The notes: generated from the letters alone by a model not told the origin. Counted from the first letter of the stretch, positions 15,401 to 21,400 are shown. The stretch is DNA of 64,000 nt from Hormiphora californensis (GCA_020137815.1 CM035350.1:9796001-9860000); one strand, 5' to 3'. Translations and numbers: made by a program.

Positions 15401-18400
15401 CAAACTTAGTTACTACATCTCAGACACACATTCGCAAGCTGGAAGCGAGTCTCACTTTAGTCTGGGTCCTATTATCATACATTATCATATACTGGTGAAT
15501 GATATGTGACATTGATTACGTCATCGAAATGACGTGGAGCAATGATAAAGTCACGTTTCGAAACGGTCATATTACAGTGTTTGTCATAATATTACAGTGA
15601 TTAGCAATCCTACCACCCCGCCCAGTTTGTGTGACTGTGTGTGAGGCAATGTTTGTGTGAGAGGCACACAATTTCCTAGTATCTTCCAACACTCCCTTCC
15701 AAATAGCTCTACCATGATATATGACAGCTCCACTTACTAATTAGTAATTAAAACTTACTAATTGGTTTGGTGTAACAAGATGTCCCATTCCAGGCGCACT
15801 TGGTGAAATCGTTTCGGGCCAGGCTCTCACACTCCCCTTTGTTTCTGTCATCACACCGACCTGGTAACATGTGCAATTATAGAACTACATTGTGGGAGTA
15901 CATTGTGGGAGTACATTGTGGGAGACTGCACCTATAGTAGTACATTGTGGGAGATTGCACGAGTTGTTTATGTTGAAATGAGGGGGGAGGGGGGGAGGGG
16001 TTCCGCCATTATCAGATTTAATACCCAAAACAACACTGTATCTGTGCTGTCTCTTATATAAGTGGTCTATGTAGTAGTACTGCAGCCGCGTTAATTACAC
16101 GCGACTTCACGTGTGAAATAAGGAATGATAATGAGTCCTCATGCCCGGTAATTAGTTGGATTATCATATTCTGTCAGTCTTTTAGAACGAATCTAGTACA
16201 CTCGTTCAAACGTACAAAATGGTATCTTCATTTACCGTCTTTAGAACAGCTGCGGTGTGTTCACTGTTCAGGCAAGCTGCAAGTGGTGGTGGAGTGAGCG
16301 TGTGTGTGTGTGTGTGTGTGTGTGTGTGTGTGTGTGTGTGTGTGTGTGTGTGTGTGTGTGTGTGTGTGTGTGTGTGTGTGTGTGTGTGTGTGTGTGTGTG
16401 TGTGTGTGTGTGTGAGCGTGTGTGTGTGATATTGTCATGAGGATAAATTTAGGAGACATGGAGAACAATTGGGCTAAAAGAATAGACAATGTCGTGATTA
16501 CTGTTTTAGAAAGAATAGACACGTGCTAAATGTATATAAGAGCTGTAATAATACACGCGGCATAACATGCACATATCTGAACAAACCTTCAGACAAACTT
16601 ATACCGCAAACTACACAGTCCGGCCCCGTGCTGCAACTTGGCTCCGAGTCCTGCATTTTCAATTCTCATCACTCATATATTCATATATTCAAGTTCTGAA
16701 ACGTCCAGTCACAATATTATTGTCCCCTCTTTACTCTCTCCCTCTCTTTCTCTCCCCTTATCTTGCTGTCTCCACAGCCCCAAAGCAAGCTCTCTCAGGT
16801 CAGAAGCCGCTACTCATTCTTGCTGCGATCTGGTTGAGCTTGGCTTGTTTCGCTGCCATGGTACCCCTGGTTTTCACCACTCCAATGAAGTGTGCCCACC
16901 GGGTAAACTCGCCTGGAAACTGGGCCCAGTTGGGCAGCCCTGTCTCAGCCACATTGTCAGAGGGGTTGGACGGGTTCCTTACAACAGGACATTTCTTCAT
17001 CGGGAACATGCCCCTTGTAGTCTCGTTATAGAACGTGGACCACTCCAGCCTCAACTCGTGTTTGCGTTGTATCATGTCAGTGAGCCGTTGCAGGAGTGTC
17101 TCGGCAGTGATGAGAAGGTTTGATACCCCCTCCTTCACCAGAGATTCGTGAGCTCCCACCACTAACAGAGAGAGGAGGAGAGAGGAGGGTCGGTGGAACT
17201 GGTCTTTCCACAGGATACCATTTCTCCAGTGCTTTACCATCCTAATCATATCCTTAATCTTAATAGGCTGCTTCCTAATGAAATCGCTCTCCTTCTCACA
17301 GTTGGCGTATATGTACCAGATGTAGTCAGCGGGTCTCTGCTCCTTCACCGTTCTGAAGAGCTCCCCACTCTCGTAGGCGTTCTTCCACTCAAAACAAGGG
17401 ATGAGGTCCACATCAAGATCCCCTCCACAGGTAAACTGGACACTGTAGGGTGTTGTTGAAACCATAGGTGATGGGAGGAAGGTGCTTCTCAGACCTGGTC
17501 AGGATCTTGGGGGCGTCTCGTATCAACTGGGCCAGGGCTGTAATAATGGATGGCAACCATCGGGGTTGTCCCGTTTTAGGAATGTCCTCGCTATACAGCA
17601 CGAGATCAATGTCAGTTCGGGATTTGCAGGCGGTATCACGACCAAGAGAACCCCCACGGGCAACCCGGCTGACTCGGAAGGGCAGGTTGTTCTTGCAGAA
17701 GTCGACAATCAAATCAATTGTCTCCTTGAAATCCTCAAATCTCACAATCTCTGGTTTGACGAGATTACCCTCTGCCAGATTTACCTGCAACTTCACGTCA
17801 GGGCCCTCCACCGAAAAGTCAGGGTGTGCCCCGATGGAGTTCTGAATGGTTGCACTCTGTAGCCGAGCATCAAGAGGTGCATCCAGAGCCCCCTGGAATG
17901 ACTGCTGAAGTTGCATCATGGTGAGGTTAGAACTCGACCTAGACTGGAATATATCCACAATGTTAGACATAACCTCCTCGCCACCTCCTCCATCAGGTTG
18001 TGGCCGTCTCTCGAACAAGTCAGCCAGATGTTCCGGAGGCTCACACCGGGATGTCTCTCGACCACCGCAGAAGGGAACAGGGTCATCGCTCAAGTCCCGG
18101 AGCAAATCCTTTACAAAGTTGTTGGAGATGAGCATTGATGCTCTGAGGTACTCCTCCGAGCCCTGGCACCTCTTAGTGTCCTCACTTTGGATCTTCATCA
18201 GTTCTGCTTTACTGCTACTCTCCTTTTTATACTTCAAATACTTGGCCTCCCAGCTTCTCTCCAGCACAAACCTTTCCCGTTCTGATTGCTGTCGCGCTGA
18301 AACGGCAGTCTCCACCTCAGGGGCACTACACCCATCCACGGAGGGATCAAATAGAACGGAACACCTCATTTCTAGGAGGATCTGGATGGATTTGTTATCG

Positions 18401-21400
18401 AACTCAGCGGGTACTGGTGACGTCATGACCAGCTCCGCTCCCTCGTTCCAGACAATATCGATAGAGGGCCCCAGGATGAGAGGCTGACAACCCTCCGCCC
18501 GTAGAACCACCCTCCACCTCAACTGACACAGCCACCCATAGCACCTGTAGTTGACATACATCAACCTACCCATGGATCCATCAAGTCGGAGGGCTAGTTC
18601 AAACCCGACACTGTTATCACATAGAGTCTTCCTGCTGACACACAGCTGCCACTTGAAATCCTGGTCATCCATGAGATCTAGTTGGGCCACCCCCTCGTGA
18701 TCCCCTGGCATCCTTACACTACTGACCGGGTTCTTATAAATCACCTCATTGGCGTGGAACATGGTGAGGATCTTAACCCCAACTACAATCGTGTCCCCCT
18801 GCACAAAGTTCCTCAGCTTATTCGTCTCACAGATGTTATCCACGCCCCGGCCTATCCCGCTGCCCGGGGGGAACTCGGTGACCAGCCTCCTGCTCTCCAC
18901 GTGGTAGGGATCCTTGAGCTCTCCCAGGGTGAACTGACACTCCAGCATGTACCTCCTGTTACCCTTGTCCTCGTTCCGGATAAACATGCTCACCTTACCA
19001 CGGGATGTCTCATCATCTCCATTGGGGAAGAGCCGCAGGGACCACTTGGTGCCGCCCATGTAGAACTTGCTAGTGTGGTAACTGTCCCGGGTAGCTAGGA
19101 GGTCTGTTTTATCTAGCTTGGCACGTGTATCATGGAGTCCATCCATTGGGTTCAGTTCTATGACATCCTGGAAGATGGTGCTGACAATGGTGTTCTCCAA
19201 CTCCACCGTTAGACAATCACCCGCCAGGAAGCCTGGTTCGTCTAGGATATCGGAGATCTTGAAGAACCGCTGACAGCCCCAGCATTGCCCATTTTTGGAG
19301 AAGACAGCCCCCTCACGGGCGGAGATACTTCGTGATTTGAGGGGCGACAGGGAGTTCACGAGGGATATGTTGAACTGGAGGGCTACCTGGACCCCGGAGG
19401 GGTAACTCGCTGCCCGGTGTAGCGACAGGTAGACGCGACAATAGTCAGCATTCAACGCCACGCCCAACTCCCAGGAGTGACCTCCGAACACGAATGGCTC
19501 CGAGCAGGCCCCGTCGTAGAGCATCTTGGAGAAATTACCAAGAAGGAACCTCAGCCGTGTTGGTCTGTAATCTAGATGGGGTGGGGCGTTTGAGTAGTCG
19601 TCGCATGTCTCCATCCGATGGAGTCGGAGAAAACAGTGAATATCTTGGAGATCTTTACTCTCCCTTCCATTATTTGAATAGAGAGAGGTAGAGGAGGTCG
19701 GCCGGCCTGGCTTCTCTCCTGGCATGTCTACAGGGGGTTACTTATTTAGTATCAGATAACGAGTACTCAACGAACAATTATATAGTAGATGCAGCACAGT
19801 GGGTAATTTTCCTGCGTGACCCTACAAAATGAAATATATGCCGTAGAAATCATATTTTTGGGCCAAAGTGACCTCTCCTAGACTAAAACCGTGCCTAGAA
19901 AGCGTTTTAGACACTTTTCAGAGTGCTTAGATGCCACCTTTTTGAGATATTTGAAGAAAATTAATTAGCTAATTAATAACTTGATTAAGTAAAAACGTAA
20001 CTTGGCTCAGGAACCACTTAGAGATCCAATTTTTGATGCAAATTGTCCGGAATGTGCATGTTTATATAGGACTTATGAAGCAACATATGGCCTAAATCAA
20101 ACCGTTTTTGAGTTATATGCCATTTTAGATCAGGCATTTTACACATAAAAGCCGTAAAAGCGAAAAATCGCTTAAATTTCGCACTTTAAATGGCTATAAA
20201 ATTCAAACGGGGGAAAAGTGGGGAATTCCCGCGACACCACAATGTTCCAAATTGTCCAGAGAGTCAGAATATCACAATGAAAAGCTTGGCGTCGAGTGGC
20301 GAAGTAACTTTTTTTGGTCATTCATACCCTAAAAATAGCCTAAATTTGACACGCGCGACTGAGAAAAAACAGTTAGAGTAAGACATATTGAACCCTAGTC
20401 ACTGAAAAGAACACAAAACAACCATCACGATACAAAAGAAATGAAAGAAAAAGAATGAAAGGTATTGTAGTAGTGTGCACATGGATCTAAGCGAATTTCA
20501 CAGCCAAAATGAAACCCCACAATTTCCCTCAACTTCAAACTAACATAAAATCTGTAAATCTCAATATTTTTCGATGCGGTTTGTTTTACGTGAAACCTTG
20601 ATTATTTTTACAATCGATATCCAAATTTCAGCAAATTTAAAGACAACTTTTTTTCCCACTTTGTAGGGTCGTTACCCACTGTGTGCAGCTCATGCTGTAA
20701 TAACAACAGTGCAGCACAAAATCAGGGGCAGTCACTAATGTTCCAAAGATTTAAACAAAGCTAATACAACAAATGAATGAAGGGCGGTTCACTGGAAGTC
20801 ACTTTCAATGCGGTACAGCCACTCTCTCTACTTGTAAAGGCAATACAAAGTATAATCCGTAAACAAGTAGAACACAACAAGCTGCTGCAGTTGTCCAGGA
20901 GGATATTGTATCAGAGAGAAAGATAGAGCGAAACTGAAAAAGATAGTGCACGCAATCCATGATGGAGTGCCTGCTTGTTAGGTACACATGCACAGGCGTA
21001 TAACAATCCGGAGAGAAGAGAGAGGAGAGAGAGGAGAGAGAGAGAGAGAGAGAGAGAGAGAGAGAGAGAGAGAGAGAGAGGAGAGTGCGCGAGTGAGCGG
21101 CTCAATAGCTGATAGCTAAGCATAGATCGCGAGAGAGAGATATCTAGTGCTCTCGATTAGCGAATCTTCGCTCTCGAAATGAATGTACAACCCTTAAAGG
21201 CCTAGATGAGAAAACATAAGAGCCCCAGGAGAGAGATATAAACAGTTGCTTGGACAATTGACCAGAGCGTGTAGCAGCTTGTCACGTGATTGATAATAAG
21301 TCATTTAGTTTAATTCTTATCATCTCATTTTTCACCATTATTATGACAGATCTGTTAGTTTTGTGTATAAGGTAGGGTACTTTTCCTCGAAACTAATAAA

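Follow-up and report, generated by a model that had tools for sequence, protein, structure and literature searches.

The bacterial cyclic oligonucleotide-based antiphage signaling (CBASS) synthetases have eukaryotic heirs in the OAS and cGAS-like enzymes. In OASL, OAS2 and OAS3 the oligoadenylate synthetase (OAS) fold is one module of a larger protein, in which it is partnered by C-terminal ubiquitin-like domains or by further OAS units in tandem, and the OASL fold can act as a scaffold. A 64,000-nucleotide stretch of the Hormiphora californensis genome (GCA_020137815.1 CM035350.1:9796001-9860000; the window in what follows, with positions counted from its first letter) contains a gene for an OAS-family enzyme with another kind of front end. 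This gene, MATH-OAS, specifies a 974-residue protein composed of two MATH domains, a conserved segment (region 3), a predicted coiled coil with a linker, and a complete OAS-family domain that is related to clade C of the CD-NTases. The MATH/coiled-coil front end is undescribed; it is represented in the databases merely as a hypothetical protein and is not confined to ctenophores.

Among the described systems close to this protein, vertebrate OAS1 provides the reference for the enzyme domain: in the pig protein Q193 contacts the donor as well as the acceptor nucleoside, T190 contacts the acceptor and D300 the donor (PMC13129866, PMC6307210), and roles have been assigned to G61, S62, S73, D74, D76, D147 and K212 (PMC13129866). 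OAS nests within bacterial clade C (PMC10732462), whose CdnC-type enzymes are reported to be regulated by HORMA proteins (bioRxiv 10.1101/694695). TRAF, SPOP and USP7, finally, are reference proteins for the MATH domain. Fusions of OAS to TRADD-N domains have been listed, but none to MATH (PMC8195603); broad surveys (PMC10732462, PMC6307210, PMC4117786) mention neither ctenophores nor MATH, and searches of the open-access literature for OAS in ctenophores, in Mnemiopsis or in association with a MATH domain found no description of the fusion. The initial annotation of this locus had spoken of a candidate undescribed sensor. For the open-access papers searched this holds as regards the architecture; as database entries, on the other hand, the proteins of Mnemiopsis and Helobdella are already in GenBank and UniProt.

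The MATH-OAS gene

MATH-OAS is read from the minus strand. As assembled, its coding sequence consists of two overlapping open reading frames, 17413..19725 (770 residues) and 16800..17465 (221 residues), which are offset from each other by one base. (The gene was searched as two separate window pieces, the joined protein was frame-checked by script only, and family members stood in for it in folding.) In the orthologue alignment the two pieces abut exactly at the frameshift point and are collinear with every orthologue.

The frameshift at 17466, which had been flagged for checking against sequencing reads, is an assembly artefact. Contigs of four public runs were aligned to window positions 16600-20600, the DNA contigs coming from two independent studies (run X1 of study P1 and run X5 of study P2), and one base at 17466/17467 is absent from every DNA contig of both. 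At a depth of 26.5 in X1, 8.95 lacks position 17466 and 17.5 lacks position 17467; in X5, 893 of 893 lack 17466. Because the two read forms differ solely as ACC versus ACT, it seems that a heterozygous synonymous site was written as ACCT in the assembly. Dropping either base generates the same protein (with the junction ...PPITMVSTT...) in a single 975-codon frame whose only stop is the terminal one, and shortens the coding sequence from 2926 to 2925 nt. The one-base consensus error is all that breaks the gene in the assembly. A search of the protein database did not return the full-length protein of the Hormiphora genome; a likely reason would be that its gene model is truncated or absent. 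Upstream, the frame is closed by a stop 4 codons before the ATG at 19725.

Constraint on the sequence is strong. The DNA contigs diverge from the window by 2-4%, yet all 33 of the best-supported differences within the coding sequence are synonymous (32 at third positions, the other an AGG/CGG exchange; 108 further differences, less well supported, are distributed over the 4-kb stretch). The protein database contains intact relatives of 904-1005 residues at 67-77% identity, together with a 540-residue fragment at 64%. The full-length relatives, which form six clusters at 90% identity, all carry MATH and OAS1_C, and one of the clusters includes Mnemiopsis leidyi KAL5263144.1, annotated as 'hypothetical protein'. 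Searches of the 110.7-Mb genome (45 contigs) with the C-terminal piece and, in six frames, with PF10421 (52.7 bits) found this as the sole OAS1_C locus. MATH-OAS is a single-copy, single-exon and intact gene that is conserved across ctenophores and under strong purifying selection.

Contigs of the oligo-dT metatranscriptome X7 align with the gene at 16789-17248 (17 differences in 460 positions) and 18376-18556 (3 in 181), and none are found on its flanks; this hints at a mature transcript.

Domains and active site of the MATH-OAS protein

A Pfam search with the 770-residue piece returns MATH_2 in two stretches (98.2 bits against a cut-off of 32) as well as MATH (PF22486 and PF00917), and both N-terminal domains lie above the curated cut-off, as anticipated for two MATH domains (Table 1). 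A custom iterated MATH hidden Markov model (HMM) recovers domain 2 at 3e-28 in P0001, the representative of the Mnemiopsis cluster; it finds two domains in the ctenophore proteins and three in P0049, of another MATH-OAS lineage. The third MATH domain that the initial annotation had thought possible is unsupported, since region 3 (residues ~335-470) is matched by neither Pfam nor the custom MATH HMM. Few parts of the protein are as conserved across orthologues as region 3, which has no match in Pfam (E<=10), to the custom HMM, or in a profile search of PDB. An AlphaFold2 (AF2) model of full-length P0001 shows low-confidence β strands alone in this region; that model, made from an 8-row alignment, has a mean predicted local distance difference test score (pLDDT) of 36 and was used in no fold search. 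Comparison of the MATH1, MATH2, region 3 and linker sub-alignments with one another by hhalign is uninformative to the extent that even MATH1 against MATH2 is weak.

The segment that follows region 3 is helical. In the AF2 model of P0006 (a 540-residue ctenophore member of the family with 64% identity, modelled from a 78-row alignment), two long helices, 35-69 and 73-111, are predicted at pLDDT ~75 and short helices at pLDDT 52-67. The ~80 residues after region 3 are accordingly likely to form a coiled coil in this model, so that what had been described as a helical linker becomes a predicted coiled coil together with a helical linker. An identity of the linker as a LOTUS/OST-HTH domain, suggested by a resemblance by eye, was dropped for want of support from Pfam and PDB profile searches.

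The 'TRAF' part of the original label is not justified. TRAF proteins combine RING and zinc fingers with a coiled coil that precedes a C-terminal MATH domain; in MATH-OAS the predicted coiled coil comes after the MATH domains, and Pfam finds only MATH families in the N-terminal 770 residues, with no RING, zinc-finger, TRAF-N, BTB or USP domain (that is, nothing of the other parts of TRAF, SPOP or USP7, including the USP catalytic domain). The nearest solved MATH sequence in PDB is that of SPOP, and the match is weak (E ~1e-3).

The C-terminal third of the protein belongs with OAS. The 221-residue piece scores 52.8 bits for Pfam OAS1_C (PF10421; cut-off 19.9). Searches of all PDB chains by phmmer with each piece retrieve OAS2, OAS1, OAS3 and OASL, as well as, with the N-lobe piece, bacterial CdnC (0.011); the remaining rows are at chance level (ribosomal protein S16 and lipocalin, E >=0.65), and poly(A) polymerase, terminal uridylyltransferase (TUTase) and cGAS are absent from these matches. 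A ctenophore-family profile aligns with pig OAS1 residues 28-329 at E 7e-18 and with OAS2 at 6e-19.

The fold was analyzed with the P0006 model as a stand-in for the window protein. Its OAS part, with pLDDT >90, has the two-lobe fold of OAS and the CD-NTases and is closest to solved OAS structures: ranks 1-9 of a Foldseek search of PDB are occupied by OAS1, OASL and OAS2 (E 1.5e-11 to 1.9e-9; pig 4RWN/1PX5 and human 4IG8 at ~1e-11), followed by CdnC (3e-9), the best match outside OAS, and OAS3. NF90/NF45, CCA-adding enzymes, cGAS and poly(A) polymerase come lower, at about 1e-6 to 3e-5. An assignment to the cGAS/cGAS-like receptor group is not indicated: cGAS structures rank below 24 (E ~1e-5), and there is no Pfam match to Mab-21 (PF03281). 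Poly(A) polymerase, TUTase and CCA-adding identities were rejected (they are missing from the PDB sequence matches and reach only E 5e-6 to 3e-5 in Foldseek, behind all OAS entries). A C-terminus that grouped with poly(A) polymerase or TUTase had been named beforehand as refuting the OAS assignment; it groups with OAS. In relation to vertebrate OAS1, overall identity is nevertheless only ~20%, and ~655 residues of MATH, region 3, coiled coil and linker precede the enzyme domain.

The catalytic core is retained. By motif and by profile alignment, G61-S62 of pig OAS1 correspond to GGS, S73 to T, D74 and D76 to D-I-D, D147 to the Asp of VDLIP, and K212 to the Lys of VKHW, in agreement with the first reading of the GGS loop, the three catalytic Asp residues and the VKHW lysine; the GS loop, Asp triad and phosphate-binding Lys are invariant in all ctenophore orthologues. 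In contrast, the positions that place adenosine in pig OAS1 are changed (T190C, Q193E, Q229S and D300N). K65 is Arg in the window protein and His in most orthologues, and at S186/T187 the ctenophore proteins differ from one another. Of the changes at the four adenosine positions, Q193E and D300N occur only in the ctenophore clade among the OAS domains compared. Since the two nucleoside-contacting positions Q193 and T190 are E and C here, the earlier suggestion that EKESDF could alter specificity is reasonable on the alignment; changes at T187/T190 in sponge OAS have been linked by Hu et al. to mixed 2'-5'/3'-5' products (PMC6307210). With nucleoside-contact positions that differ from those of pig OAS1, the product may not be the classical 2'-5' oligoadenylate (2-5A). 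The basic helix that contacts double-stranded RNA (dsRNA) in OAS1, which had been listed as kept, is partly retained and incomplete (a 17-residue window stretch set against RNRPTKLKSLIRLVKHW); the Lys/Arg before GGS is also kept.

Table 1. Features of MATH-OAS and of its surroundings (window coordinates)
Feature	Position	Strand	Evidence and remarks
Whole MATH-OAS coding sequence	16800..19725	-	ATG 19723-19725, stop 16800-16802; open reading frames, orthologue alignment, read contigs, frame check
MATH domain 1	19195..19536	-	residues 64-177; Pfam MATH_2 6e-28, MATH 3.1e-10; weak SPOP MATH matches in PDB
MATH domain 2	18769..19095	-	residues ~211-319; Pfam MATH_2 6.3e-13, 49.6 bits alone (18724-19125)
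Conserved region 3, no fold match	18316..18723	-	residues ~335-470
Predicted coiled-coil helices, then small helical linker	17761..18315	-	residues ~471-655; AF2 model of P0006; no Pfam family
OAS-type nucleotidyltransferase, N-terminal part	17467..17760	-	residues ~656-753; PDB phmmer OAS2/OAS1; profile alignment to pig OAS1
OAS-type nucleotidyltransferase, C-terminal part	16803..17465	-	Pfam OAS1_C 4.8e-14; PDB OAS2 9e-13, OAS1 1e-9
GGS loop	17647-17655	-	motif read and alignment
Catalytic D-I-D	17605-17613	-	motif read and alignment
Third catalytic Asp	17406-17408	-	Asp of VDLIP
CEKESDF	17280-17300	-	E at pig Q193 = 17289-17291
VKHW Lys	17232-17234	-	motif read and alignment
Asn at pig D300	16974-16976	-	profile alignment
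One-base assembly artefact (ACC/ACT allelic site written ACCT)	17466..17467	-	read contigs, frame check
TATATAA, possible core promoter	19778..19784	-	inference from sequence; ~55 nt upstream of ATG
Upstream host exons: CUB, EGF, attractin/LZTR1 kelch propeller	21344..25612	-	Pfam on exon-sized open frames
Downstream host exons: PSI, laminin/attractin EGF	5155..14251	-	Pfam EGF_LMN_ATRN 3e-10, EGF_laminin 5.5e-7, PSI_integrin 0.034

Distribution of the fusion and setting of the gene

When 1.84 billion cluster representatives were searched exhaustively with HMMER (367 matches), Pfam scans and local phmmer then showed the combination of MATH and OAS in other proteins as well. The initial annotation had seen the architecture as one of an early-branching animal, and in ctenophores it is real; it is also found in the leech Helobdella robusta (XP_009029399.1 / T1FGW8, 979 residues, named 'MATH domain-containing protein') with its relative P0199, in P0037 (799 residues), in P0045 (943 residues), and in the P0049 family (P0049 and P0191-P0198; nine clusters, ~920-970 residues). 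The Helobdella protein resembles that of Hormiphora in its order of N-terminal MATH and C-terminal OAS, its nearly equal length and its catalytic residues. It differs in that identity is ~30% in the OAS part and similarity of the N-terminal half is at the motif level only, and in that D300 is retained and Q193 is R. Members of the P0049 family, which come from environmental and Logan assemblies, combine three MATH domains and a coiled coil with an OAS-like domain from which the first Asp of the DxD motif and the third catalytic Asp have been lost. The family is conserved in spite of this loss; its OAS-like domain is, on sequence, probably a pseudoenzyme.

On the OAS-domain tree the ctenophore proteins are recovered as a clade with full support, within a larger (starred) clade of 15 rows that also contains OAS domains of Oscarella, Ciona and Branchiostoma. 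These nearest OAS domains (Oscarella P0024, Ciona P0031, Branchiostoma P0025 and P0023) share RPSSYLL for LPPQYAL with the ctenophore proteins, but have no MATH domains and neither the E at Q193 nor the N at D300. A single origin of all MATH-OAS proteins is rejected on the OAS tree (approximately unbiased test, p-AU 0.0036), which implies that the fusion arose more than once or that MATH was repeatedly lost. Constraining ctenophores and Helobdella together, on the other hand, is not rejected and improves the score (p-AU 0.6, log-likelihood +4.4); a shared ctenophore-annelid origin of MATH-OAS is possible, with the caveat of long branches.

Of all named relatives, P0023 comes closest to the ctenophore OAS domain, at 37% identity. 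This protein (P0023 / P0171, Branchiostoma lanceolatum CAH1264557.1, named 'AK5') joins three adenylate-kinase domains, possibly an ATP-supplying module, to OAS, and is another undescribed OAS fusion.

Exons of an attractin/MEGF8-like host gene, identified by Pfam in exon-sized open frames, flank MATH-OAS on both sides and all lie on the minus strand, so that the gene is nested in a host intron in the same orientation, as had been read from the sequence. The exon-like frames of the host gene that lie furthest upstream are carried by a ~2.3-kb tandem duplication (25573-27886 / 29996-32309, 99.87% identity), which may be a recent segmental duplication or a duplication in the assembly. A downstream host intron contains a 5.5-kb tandem satellite (7880-13354) whose open frames, on both strands and of up to 1256 codons, are repeat artefacts and not genes.

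The immediate flanks of MATH-OAS are irregular. Directly upstream of the start codon, at 19795-20600, reads are 5-15 times deeper than over the gene, with contig breaks at 19795, 19821, 20046 and 20096; a mobile element present in many copies, and possibly polymorphic, behaves in this way. On the other side, contigs of both DNA studies depart from the window immediately beyond the stop codon, at 16791, suggesting that the haplotypes differ structurally in the 3' flank; ~300 nt downstream of the stop codon, 16268-16522 is occupied by a long (CA)n microsatellite.

A proposed mechanism and its alternatives

The reading that we favor, and hold as a whole to be moderately probable, is that of an intact and conserved MATH-MATH-X-coiled coil-OAS gene whose product is an active oligonucleotide synthetase, placed or gated by its MATH domains, in a context of defence. 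The C-terminal domain would act as a nucleotidyltransferase and produce a short oligonucleotide as a signal; given the altered nucleoside pocket, the product would probably not be strictly of the 2'-5' adenylate series. The coiled coil would oligomerize the protein, and the MATH domains would place or gate the enzyme by binding short peptide motifs in a partner, which could be an adaptor of the host or a protein of a pathogen. Cell-autonomous defence would be the most likely biological context, and MATH-OAS might then serve as an innate-immune sensor that couples peptide recognition to synthesis, the role proposed for it initially. MATH-OAS thus conceived would differ from OASL, OAS2 and OAS3 in carrying its additional module, MATH and coiled coil, at the N-terminus of an enzyme that looks catalytically competent from its residues.

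An analogy for gating by MATH is offered by bacterial CdnC, a related enzyme gated by HORMA proteins, which bind peptides. CdnC of CBASS type III can be thought of as a CD-NTase controlled by a protein-recognizing module and not by nucleic acid, and hypothetical gating by MATH would be alike in concept. HORMA and MATH are, however, unrelated folds, and the CBASS regulator is a separate protein. An extension of this reading, which is speculative and which we regard as rather unlikely, would make MATH-OAS an ancient animal enzyme that predates the split between ctenophores and bilaterians and was kept in ctenophores and leeches. MATH peptide recognition, and not dsRNA, would switch on an OAS-type synthetase, the altered pocket would yield a messenger other than 2-5A, its receptor would be neither RNase L nor STING, and the whole would be a eukaryotic counterpart of HORMA-gated CdnC.

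Several considerations weigh against the favored reading. Enzymatic activity is a prediction across the MATH-OAS family, and the conserved P0049 family, with two catalytic Asp residues lost, implies that the architecture can work without catalysis. An immune role may not be assumed from homology, since the sponge enzymes reportedly do not depend on dsRNA and RNase L is reported missing from early metazoans (PMC6307210; ctenophores were not sampled in that survey). No receptor for the product has been identified, and a six-frame search of the genome gave no match to STING_LBD (PF15009) or Mab-21 (PF03281), a weak negative because the search proceeds exon by exon; MATH-OAS may be the only CD-NTase-type gene in the Hormiphora genome. 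The RNA contigs, finally, are environmental, and could reflect carry-over of DNA.

In an alternative reading, MATH-OAS is a non-immune housekeeping or regulatory nucleotidyltransferase, as for sponge OAS, tethered to a cellular complex by its MATH domains and coiled coil. This we think fairly unlikely. A single-copy, slowly evolving gene with purely synonymous polymorphism has none of the duplication and diversification of an arms race, and Hu et al. have argued that ancestral OASs were regulatory and not antiviral (PMC6307210); what stands on the other side is prior expectation only, in that OAS/CD-NTase relatives of known function are overwhelmingly defence enzymes (PMC10732462) and that MATH domains recur in immune adaptors.

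A classical OAS, that is, a dsRNA-activated 2-5A synthetase whose product activates an RNase L-like nuclease and to which MATH adds localization only, is improbable. The partly kept basic helix and the Lys/Arg before GGS are consistent with it, as is a second kinase and KEN-like open frame that the genome contains besides IRE1 (G000:C11:5650672-5652231, plus strand). This 520-codon frame comprises an IRE1-type kinase and a borderline KEN domain (Ribonuc_2-5A, 22.9 bits, just below the cut-off of 23.3). It has no luminal, transmembrane or ankyrin part upstream, is cytosolic and IRE1/RNase L-like, and is separate from the canonical IRE1 KEN exon on C6. However, its matches are to IRE1, none of the 60 best listed being an RNase L chain, and it lacks the ankyrin repeats; a search of the genome for RNase L found only IRE1 and this IRE1-like frame. 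To our knowledge, neither an interferon system nor RNase L is known in ctenophores. The four changed donor and acceptor residues (PMC13129866) and the dsRNA-independence of sponge OAS also speak against a classical enzyme.

To much the same degree we doubt that MATH-OAS is a catalysis-independent, OASL-like scaffold, an oligomeric platform for binding protein or RNA. The P0049 family provides an example of such conservation, and a precedent exists in human OASL (4xq7, among the top fold matches), where the OAS fold is inactive and joined to other domains. In the proteins of ctenophores and Helobdella, in contrast, every metal- and phosphate-binding residue is retained across all orthologues, which makes catalysis hard to dispense with. 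A decaying pseudogene or a transposon-borne passenger frame is highly improbable and was rejected: the window sequence is frameshifted and a multi-copy element adjoins the 5' flank at 19795-20600, but the extra base is in no read contig, the ratio of synonymous to non-synonymous variants is 33:0, several ctenophores have intact orthologues, and the gene is single-copy.

To return to an active synthetase placed or gated by MATH, the question that it addresses is how OAS/cGAS-like enzymes were wired into animal signaling before interferon and RNase L. The fusion of an apparently active OAS-type enzyme with a peptide-binding MATH module is conserved and occurs in one of the two earliest-branching animal phyla, with an origin that is possibly shared with the leech protein, and makes this question of wiring testable.

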